Shown: positions 39,365 through 40,534, numbered from the whole stretch's first letter. The stretch is DNA of 63,172 nucleotides, filler included, from Olpidium bornovanus S191 (GCA_017911155.1; 30 parts of 30 records of this genome joined end to end with filler, not necessarily neighbours in it); one strand, 5' to 3'. The notes: generated from the sequence alone by a model not told the origin. Numbers and translations are program-made.

Positions 39365-40534
39365 TCAGTTGTCCTCCCCGACTAGCAGTTCCATCCACCT
39401 CTGGAGGACCTTGTTCTTCTGGACGCCGTCCAGGCTTCCGACCGCCTTTTCGAACTCGGCGTAGGAGATGGACCCGTCGCCGTTGGAGTCCGCGTGGCTC
39501 ATGAGAGCGGCGGTGTGGCGGCGGACCATGGCCTCGTACTGCTCCTCGGGGACGGTCGGGTGGCGGGTGAGCGTCTCGCGGACGACCTGCTCCAGGTCGG
39601 CGCGGCTGATGCCGCCGCCCAGTTGCGGCGTGCGGTTGAACCACTCGAAGGCCTCGCGGACGTTGCGCTCGCCCAGGATCTTGCGCACCTCGGAGCTGCA
39701 CTGCCGGACCTCGCCGAGGTCGAGGTCCCCCGACTGGTCCTTGTCGGCCTTTTCCAGGACCCGCGAGGCGTACGACTTTTTTTTTTTTTTGTGCGGGTCG
39801 CGCGCGTGCGGCGCGGGAGCGGGTGGGGGGGGGAGGGGGGGGGAAGGGAAGGGGAGGGCGCGAAAAAAAAAAAAATTAAAATAAGAAGCTGTCGCGTAAG
39901 ACGCCCTTTTTTCTGCTTCGCCGTGATTTTCTCTTTTTTTTGCTTTTCTTTCTTTTGCGGCGCAAATAAACGACATGCCCGCCCACGACAAATGAACCCC
40001 GCAGAGTGGGTGTGGGGGAGGTGGAAGGCTTACGTCGATGATGGCCTCGTAGTTGCCCTGCTCCCCTCTGAGGTTGACCTGGCTCGGCGGGAAGTACTGC
40101 ACCAGGGCCTTCACGAGCTCGGAGCGGGACAGGCGGCCGTCTCCGTTGACGTCGAGGGCGTTGAACGCCTCCTTGAGGTCCTGGTCGTCGTAGACGCTCA
40201 GCAGCCCGCGCCGCAGCAAGCCCAGGAAGACGAACGTGAGGCAGAAGTGGCTCGACCGGATGCAGTGCTGTCGAAAGCGGGAGAGCCGCCGCGGCGCGCG
40301 CGGGCGCGCGAGGGGGGAGTTGGCGGTTGGCGGGATACACCCCAAAAAAAAAAACCGGCCGAACGTGTGAACTCCTTCACCCCCCCCCCCCCCCCCCCCC
40401 CCCCCCCCGCAAAAAGCAGACGCGGGACAAAAAAAAAACAAACTTACGCTCGCGTATCCCTTGTACAGCGCGAAGAACCCCTCGTGCTTCATCACTTTTC
40501 TGAACGTGTCCCAGCCCGACGAGTACATGACGCC
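39365..40534 (-). CDS. Mitochondrial carrier (SLC25; Oac1/SLC25A34-35 or DIC-like last repeat) fused to a C-terminal EF-hand module, 5'-partial
   Basis: Exon ending 40448 (YSSGWDTFRKVMKHEGFFALYKGYAS) splices in phase 0 to exon 40267-40034 (HCIRSSHFCLTFVFLGLLRRGLL...DVNGDGRLSRSE). Exon 39775-39365 carries DKDQSGDLDLGE and DSNGDGSISYAE. Confidence 0.85.
   Translation of the reverse strand, partial: GVMYSSGWDTFRKVMKHEGFFALYKGYASVSLFFFCPASAFCGGGGGGGGGGEGVHTFGRFFFLGCIPPTANSPLARPRAPRRLSRFRQHCIRSSHFCLTFVFLGLLRRGLLSVYDDQDLKEAFNALDVNGDGRLSRSELVKALVQYFPPSQVNLRGEQGNYEAIIDVSLPPPPHPLCGVHLSWAGMSFICAAKERKAKKRENHGEAEKRASYATASYFNFFFFRALPFPSPPLPPPPAPAPHARDPHKKKKKSYASRVLEKADKDQSGDLDLGEVRQCSSEVRKILGERNVREAFEWFNRTPQLGGGISRADLEQVVRETLTRHPTVPEEQYEAMVRRHTAALMSHADSNGDGSISYAEFEKAVGSLDGVQKNKVLQRWMELLVGEDN

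Follow-up and report, generated by a model that had tools for sequence, protein, structure and literature searches.

A 63,172-nt stretch of DNA from Olpidium bornovanus S191 (GCA_017911155.1), hereafter the window, appears to carry on its minus strand the 3' end of a spliced gene for a mitochondrial carrier. In the reading that we favor, to which we assign a probability of about 0.7, the product is an SLC25 carrier of the Oac1/SLC25A34/35 type whose last transmembrane helix (helix 6) runs into four EF-hand units, which form a calmodulin-like domain at the C-terminus and a candidate Ca2+ gate. We read it as representing a third, reversed class of Ca2+-binding mitochondrial carrier. Sequences of this kind are already public under automatic names, and their Pfam architecture can be seen there. 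A full-text literature search, which did not cover subscription journals, found no paper describing or testing carriers with C-terminal EF-hands.

Gene structure and spliced contigs

The usable DNA around the gene spans positions 39122-40646. Within this piece, positions 39365-40528 form a stop-free frame of 387 codons. What looks like a single open reading frame (ORF) actually consists of three exons and two in-frame introns, arranged as follows in the order of transcription.

40536-40646, minus strand: 3' part of an upstream intron cut by the edge of the piece; acceptor context ..GACGCAG/GCGTC; contigs stop matching at 40535
40448-40535 (start about 40534-40535), minus strand: exon for the final part of carrier repeat 3, matrix-side helix and EG..YKG signature, ...G-VMYSSGWDTFRKVMKHEGFFALYKGYAS (contigs, Mito_carr, family alignment)
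40268-40447, minus strand: intron of 180 nt (GTAAGT..CAG) without an in-frame stop; absent from contigs X9 and X6
40034-40267, minus strand: exon with helix 6 SSHFCLTFVFLGLLRR (40208-40255), an 18-residue linker and the EF-hand 1 loop DVNGDGRLSRSE (40118-40153)
39776-40033, minus strand: intron of 258 nt (GTAAGC..AAG) without an in-frame stop; absent from contigs X9 and X6
39365-39775, minus strand: last exon (Pfam, loop scan, alignment, splice junctions)
39710-39745, minus strand: EF-hand 2 loop DKDQSGDLDLGE (loop scan)
39596-39637, minus strand: EF-hand 3, degenerate, NRTPQLGGGISRAD, outside the canonical loop pattern
39455-39490, minus strand: EF-hand 4 loop DSNGDGSISYAE (loop scan)
39377-39415, minus strand: terminal Trp helix NKVLQRWMELLVG (conserved terminal motif)
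39365-39367, minus strand: stop codon TGA
39317-39364, minus strand: 3' untranslated stretch in the transcript contig; X9 matches down to 39317, X6 departs at 39358

Public sequencing runs were aligned to the piece, and Logan assembled contigs were obtained, one each in two runs, X9 and X6, whose kind is an automatic guess ('RNA?', 'DNA?'). Both contigs (X9, 1750 nt, word depth 224; X6, 1627 nt, depth 17) contain all three exons and join 39775 to 40034 and 40267 to 40448 exactly, with GT..AG intron ends. They show the spliced form only, and no intron-containing sequence was present in any run examined. Two raw RNA-seq runs under the same species label (X23 and X24) yielded 0 reads on the piece and are uninformative on splicing; parts of the window sequence are found in root metatranscriptomes. 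The contigs differ from the window at 39506, 39583 and 39709. One change is synonymous (A196) and two replace residues (V171I, and V129F directly after the EF-hand 2 loop); with the frame and all loops preserved, this looks like strain-level variation.

The spliced peptide of the window has 242 residues, and the G+C content at third codon positions (GC3) is 0.947. Translation of the first exon in the piece (40448 to about 40534) gives ...GVMYSSGWDTFRKVMKHEGFFALYKGYAS. The middle exon encodes HCIRSSHFCLTFVFLGLLRR-GLLSVYDDQDLKEAFNAL-DVNGDGRLSRSE-LVKALVQYFPP...YEAIID, and the last one opens with SYASRVLEKADKDQSGDLDLGE (SYASRVLEKA-DKDQSGDLDLGE-...) and ends with ...NKVLQRWMELLVGEDN / VLQRWMELLVGEDN, followed by TGA. 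Upstream of 40535, where the contig match ends, the genomic frame contains an in-frame stop; the joined reading of the transcript there is ...YNQKYDANGKG/VMYSSGWD, which corresponds to the family motif RxYNQP....GKG.Y..G.D. Contig X9 extends 847 nt further upstream, leaving room for ~280 codons. We infer the rest of the carrier from this extension, from the loose end YNQKYDANGKG and from the full-length homologues described below.

Such a fusion could be an artefact, arising by read-through or because a gene model or the assembly joined a carrier gene to an EF-hand gene next to it. The piece does hold half a carrier repeat only, and prokaryote-style gene callers split genes of this kind, as at locus L005, where a Mito_carr fragment lies beside the EF-hand protein P0036. 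Helix 6 and EF-hand 1, however, share one exon with no stop between them, the spliced contigs carry the three exons plus the upstream extension, and independent genomes and transcriptomes show this junction many times over, once in an intronless ORF. With canonical splice sites and these homologues, little room is left for an artefact; this explanation is already contradicted, and its chances are negligible. Up to this point the sequence-only reading, made before any database search, stands: it had placed helix 6 and EF-hand 1 in a single exon (40267-40034), a junction now found in dozens of homologues, it had drawn the splice junctions 40448/40267 and 40034/39775 where the contigs have them, and it had counted two canonical loops and a degenerate one in the next exon, which with EF-hand 1 gives the three canonical loops of the loop scan.

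The lengths of the two introns, 258 and 180 nt, are divisible by three and neither intron contains an in-frame stop; their retention would add 86 and 60 low-complexity residues, respectively. The chance of such stop-free introns is roughly 1 in 1000 for random sequence of the same composition, odds that are inflated by homopolymer runs; the introns contain runs of C29 (40380-40408) and T14 (39777-39790). Past the 3' untranslated stretch, the segment 39122-39305 contains extreme homopolymer runs (A22, A70, A48, C10 and G20 on the plus strand); it could represent intergenic DNA of low complexity or a fault in the assembly. Contig X6 continues past 39358 with unrelated letters. Two plus-strand ORFs, 39494-40702 (402 aa) and 39468-39884 (138 aa), were rejected as genes: they have no Pfam match and are an expected by-product of the high GC3 (0.95).

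A widespread family with the same junction

Searching with the read-through frame identified P0001, a protein of 406 aa in which three Mito_carr repeats (E 6e-59) are followed by EF-hands at the same junction. The junction region of P0001 retrieved 38 proteins, mostly from named Chytridiomycota (Spizellomyces, Batrachochytrium, Synchytrium, Rhizophlyctis and others) and from Allomyces. An exhaustive profile search over 1.84 billion representatives, using the junction and EF-hand region (alignment A1), added proteins of about 470-600 aa that match the profile from position 1-3 to about 240, at their own C-termini. Giant multi-EF-hand proteins crowded this search, and fusions were told apart by their length and by a match that begins at profile position 1-3. 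By cluster names, the long forms include Amoebozoa (Balamuthia, Vermistella and Clydonella), Syssomonas (Holozoa), the diatom Helicotheca, the glaucophytes Gloeochaete and Cyanophora, and Acrasis (Heterolobosea); Catenaria, Blastocladiella and Coelomomyces are the Blastocladiomycota members. Odontella, Asterionellopsis, Thalassiosira, Synchytrium endobioticum and Physarum were added by a carrier-domain profile search.

Mito_carr is present in 34/34 aligned members and EF-hand in 30/34; P0001 and P0018, scanned individually, have three Mito_carr stretches each. One member, P0022, is a single uninterrupted ORF of 538 codons on four independent contigs. The family comes in a short form of about 420 aa with two EF-hands, typical of most chytrids, and a long form of about 490-550 aa with four EF-hand units and a terminal Trp motif. 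The window peptide is of the long form: it aligns over all its 242 residues with Synchytrium P0209 and with P0018 at 36-38% identity (E 1e-45 to 1e-49). We define the family by the helix 6 motif GPHFxLTFxFL..RR with EF-hand 1 following within about 10-25 residues, and its long form by the four units and a terminal xxWxxxAG[VI] motif; the window fits except for having SSH in place of GPH. No protein more than 38% identical to the window peptide was found in collections of 5.8 billion and 1.84 billion proteins, and a metagenome scan with the last exon returned distant relatives only.

Altogether, the order of three Mito_carr repeats and then EF-hands is found in chytrids, Blastocladiomycota, Amoebozoa, a holozoan, glaucophytes, diatoms and a heterolobosean. 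This is a widespread, database-resident family rather than a one-off, which lowers the surprise of the window gene and strengthens its reality.

Among fungi the fusion occurs in zoosporic lineages; the forms in Mortierello- and Glomeromycota have no EF-hands, nor do yeast Oac1 and animal SLC25A34/35. The only fungi reported with the animal-type set of the MCU/MICU1/EMRE uniporter are Allomyces, Catenaria and Spizellomyces (PMC7423614), and all three genera bear the fusion. The co-occurrence is suggestive but anecdotal.

Several relatives carry annotations that hide one half of the protein. In P0215 (Physarum), P0216, P0211 (Lobulomyces) and P0037 (Blastocladiella emersonii), Mito_carr is the sole precomputed Pfam hit, yet their tails contain EF-hand loops (YDKDGDGKLNLPD, DTNQNGKLDFSE, DANNDGALNLSE and DRDGDGVLNVAE, respectively); the fusion is therefore commoner than domain tables suggest. 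At L005:3380-4678, on an 80-kb JGI contig, the calls break a homologous gene into three small ones: a Mito_carr fragment of 62 aa, an ORF of 79 aa and P0036, of 225 aa. Prokaryote-style gene calling thus splits the fusion at its introns, so that the family is under-counted and the EF-hand half appears as a stand-alone protein. Automatic names can also mislead: Balamuthia P0064 and P0189 are called 'Tricarboxylate transport protein', and others 'EF-hand domain-containing protein' or SCaMC-like.

The two halves of the protein and their origin

SLC25 (Mito_carr) proteins are built of three tandem repeats of about 100 residues, each with two transmembrane helices, and carry the signature PX[DE]XX[KR] on helices 1, 3 and 5. 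The homologues have the consensus PFDTAK, PFELVK and PIDVxR at these places. In the window, where only the last half-repeat lies within the piece, Mito_carr scores 22.4 bits (cut-off 22.3) over profile positions 46-67.

The carrier subfamily was judged on the long-form homologue P0018, whose AlphaFold2 model was searched against Swiss-Prot models, and on profile scores against the PDB. Yeast Oac1 (33% identity), SLC25A34 (32-34%) and SLC25A35 (33-35%) came at the top of the fold search, followed by 2-oxoglutarate/malate carriers (OGC; 29-31%), UCPs (26-32%) and dicarboxylate carriers (DIC; 24-25%); neither SCaMC nor aralar was among the top 30 Swiss-Prot rows. The carrier-domain profile scored about 230 bits with UCP1/UCP2 versus about 143 with ADP/ATP carriers (AAC). 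Some members are automatically named 'solute carrier family 25 protein 34/35' (JGI) or 'Mitochondrial oxaloacetate carrier protein' (NCBI), and the nearest relatives lacking EF-hands bear the names 'Mitochondrial oxaloacetate carrier protein' and 'SLC25A35'. Through P0018, these comparisons support assigning the carrier to the Oac1/SLC25A34/SLC25A35 clade, the window itself being comparable over about 55 residues.

At the start of helix 6 the window reads HCIRSSHFCL (codons for R-S-S-H at 40244-40255), while 34/34 aligned relatives have R-x-G-P-H with invariant G and P. The substitution is real, since the contigs agree with the window to within one letter in this exon (40034-40267). Might the window gene then be a paralogue, in decay or with a new function, that has lost transport regardless of how the rest of the family behaves? 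Along with R-S-S-H, the degenerate EF-hand 3 and the lack of any protein above 38% identity in the collections searched could be taken this way. The frame is nevertheless open, the splice sites are intact and contig depth reaches 224; GC3 is typical of an expressed, codon-biased gene, and three perfect loops and the terminal motif are kept. We consider loss of transport in this copy quite improbable. At the other end of helix 6, fungal-type members including the window have FVFLGxxRR and non-fungal ones FVFLEQxRR (alignment A2): in the fungal group, glycine replaces the acidic residue expected in the cytoplasmic salt-bridge motif, and the linker to EF-hand 1 is also shorter there.

In the C-terminal half, Pfam EF-hand_1 matches the window peptide in three stretches (E 5e-17). 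An EF-hand has helices on either side of a 12-residue loop of the pattern D-x-[DNS]-x-[DNSG]-G-x-[ILV]-x-x-x-[ED]; the loop scan recognizes three canonical loops (DVNGDGRLSRSE, DKDQSGDLDLGE and DSNGDGSISYAE); the fourth unit, NRTPQLGGGISRAD, does not fit. By sequence and by PDB structure, the best matches of the domain are calmodulin, calmodulin-like domains of CDPK, centrin and troponin C; sequence matches to calmodulin, centrin and troponin C have E values of 1e-13 to 5e-20 and Foldseek agrees. On these grounds we call the C-terminal domain calmodulin-like. Among the structural matches, the regulatory domain of SCaMC is a middling one (18-20% identity), behind calmodulin, centrin and troponin C. 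The peptide ends with VLQRWMELLVG, a version of the family motif [RK][VL][LM]xxW[ML][RK]xAG[VI], which is conserved from fungi to glaucophytes.

The trees come from 'quick' searches; they include no Oac1, A34 or A35 references and lack a secure root. In the tree of the C-terminal region, the window falls on the fungal side of a split with 99% support. In the carrier-domain tree, fungal members form a group supported at 99% and EF-hand-bearing proteins make up most of the clade. Forms devoid of EF-hands (the Mortierello- and Glomeromycota 'Oac1' proteins and two Acrasis paralogues), whose tails are short or of low complexity, nest inside it. This arrangement suggests that these forms lost the EF-hand domain later, a direction that depends on the insecure root.

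The proteins might instead be domain-permuted relatives of SCaMC/APC or aralar rather than an independent invention. In a language-model feature search, clusters of SCaMC and Sal1 came out as neighbours of P0018, and the SCaMC regulatory domain is among the structural matches. We rejected those clusters as relatives: the search takes no account of domain order, and they differ in carrier subfamily. For the carrier part, Oac1/SLC25A34/35 are the nearest proteins, neither SCaMC nor aralar is among the top 30 Swiss-Prot rows, UCP scores lie far above those of AAC-like carriers, and the regulatory-domain match is the middling one noted above. Permutation is thus very unlikely. Both halves are unlike their counterparts in the known Ca2+-binding carriers, and their order is inverted, so that an origin of the C-terminal EF-hand fusion independent of SCaMC/APC and of aralar/citrin appears well supported by the sequence and model comparisons. 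The broader proposals of the sequence-only reading fare well here: an Oac1/SLC25A34-35-type carrier (now placed ahead of DIC), a calmodulin-like C-terminal domain and an origin separate from SCaMC and aralar. Its premise that the known Ca2+-regulated carriers bear EF-hands at the N-terminus agrees with the literature (PMC6283063, PMC4250520, PMC12410006), and recent reviews, PMC12410006 among them, list APC and AGC as the EF-hand carriers.

Proposed gating and comparison with known systems

In the AlphaFold2 model of P0018 (mean predicted local distance difference test score, pLDDT, 87; predicted template modelling score, pTM, 0.76), a single helix, residues 306-347, spans helix 6 and the entering helix of EF-hand 1, and this block has a pLDDT of 88-95. 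A continuous helix from helix 6 into EF-hand 1 is thus predicted for the homologue; in the window, too, 18 residues separate ...LLRR from the first loop. A model of the domain alone has a pLDDT above 90 across the greater part of the EF region.

SLC25 carriers have both their termini on the intermembrane-space side, and closure of the carrier on its cytoplasmic face requires movement of helix 6, among other helices. General SLC25 topology would therefore position the C-terminal EF-hand domain in the intermembrane space, where it would sense cytosolic Ca2+, as do the N-terminal EF-hand domains of APC and AGC (PMC6283063, PMC4250520). There, Ca2+-dependent opening or rearrangement of the first EF-hand pair could permit or block the transport cycle via helix 6; the terminal Trp helix might dock on, or be released from, a lobe or the carrier, possibly aiding control. 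Ca2+ signals would in this way be coupled to the exchange of a small anion such as oxaloacetate, sulfate or malonate, possibly phosphoenolpyruvate; by homology, Oac1-type small anions are the likely substrates.

The architecture could be real and the EF-hand domain still not be a transport gate. It might serve as a structural, dimerisation, tethering or partner-binding module, whether or not in a Ca2+-dependent manner. According to one review, Ca2+ regulation of AGC transport finds no support in recent data (PMC12410006), and many members lack canonical loops: P0128 and P0176 have none, P0096 and P0137 one, and the window has its degenerate unit. Most members, however, keep 2-4 canonical loops over more than a billion years of divergence, with all four retained in the diatoms, Balamuthia and Vermistella, and the predicted rigid connection from helix 6 to EF-hand 1 puts the sensor directly on the moving gate helix. 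We regard a non-gating role as unlikely, though worth keeping in mind, and retain the Oac1-type carrier with a C-terminal candidate Ca2+ gate.

Several points weigh against this interpretation. Splicing is documented by contigs from two runs of guessed kind, raw RNA runs giving 0 reads; the piece includes only about 55 carrier residues, the upstream exons lying outside; the trees are quick ones lacking Oac1/A34/A35 references and a secure root. EF-hand 3 is degenerate, and R-S-S-H in place of the invariant G-P at the start of helix 6 could denote an impaired or divergent copy. For every member, gating, Ca2+ binding, transport, substrate and location are read from sequence and model. EF-hands on a carrier do not prove gating, because the case of aralar/citrin is disputed: a review argues that their EF-hand domain does not regulate transport (PMC12410006).

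A stronger version, in which the family is an ancient, independent third class of Ca2+-regulated carrier and Ca2+ directly switches oxaloacetate/sulfate/phosphoenolpyruvate exchange (anaplerosis) through a rigid helix 6-sensor connection, unlike the 'locking pin' of APC, is one we hold tentatively, at somewhat short of even odds. Ca2+ control of mitochondrial metabolite exchange is known for two carrier types only, both with N-terminal EF-hands and one of them disputed. If the proposal is true, eukaryotes repeatedly wired Ca2+ signals to carriers, and Ca2+ is linked to anaplerotic traffic of the oxaloacetate type. The family would also offer a natural test of how an external domain gates the SLC25 alternating-access cycle through helix 6.

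Oac1p (P32332), SLC25A34 and SLC25A35, the closest reviewed proteins (32-35%), share the signature ...EG..A.YKG...H..R.GPH..LTF.F... with the family. They end a few residues past helix 6, whereas members of the family run on for another 90-220 residues, which contain 2 or 4 EF-hands and, in the long form, the terminal Trp helix. Oac1 transports oxaloacetate and sulfate. Two 2026 preprints propose import of oxaloacetate or phosphoenolpyruvate for SLC25A34, and a 2025 review still counts SLC25A34/35 among the unidentified carriers (PMC12410006). Regulated microbial forms could help define the substrates of the Oac1/SLC25A34/35 clade.

With SCaMC/APC (SLC25A23/24/25, Sal1) the family shares a calmodulin-like four-EF-hand domain on an SLC25 carrier, on the intermembrane-space side (here predicted), and the possession of an extra helix: the amphipathic helix of SCaMC/APC, which is part of the mechanism (PMC6283063, PMC12410006), and here the conserved terminal helix. 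In SCaMC/APC, N-terminal EF-hands are connected through a loop and the amphipathic helix to an AAC-like nucleotide carrier; here the EF-hands are C-terminal, on a predicted continuous helix, and the carrier is of the keto-acid/anion type. The definition of that class by an N-terminal four-EF-hand domain, an amphipathic linker helix and an AAC-like carrier domain does not fit the family, whose EF-hands are C-terminal and whose carrier profile scores UCP far above AAC. APC is controlled by a distinct amphipathic helix that moves back and forth between the regulatory domain and the carrier domain (PMC12410006), a mechanism from which the proposed coupling through helix 6 would differ.

Aralar/citrin (SLC25A12/13) likewise combine an EF-hand domain, a carrier and a short C-terminal helix, which in their case docks on the EF-hand domain (PMC4250520). 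They differ in being dimeric amino-acid carriers with eight N-terminal EF-hands; our family does not fit that description, its domain order being reversed, and no AGC was found among its close matches. Finally, the two lobes and long central helix seen in the P0018 model are those of calmodulin, centrin and troponin C, but here the domain is predicted to be continuous with a membrane helix, has a conserved C-terminal Trp motif of its own and, in the window, carries a degenerate EF-hand 3.

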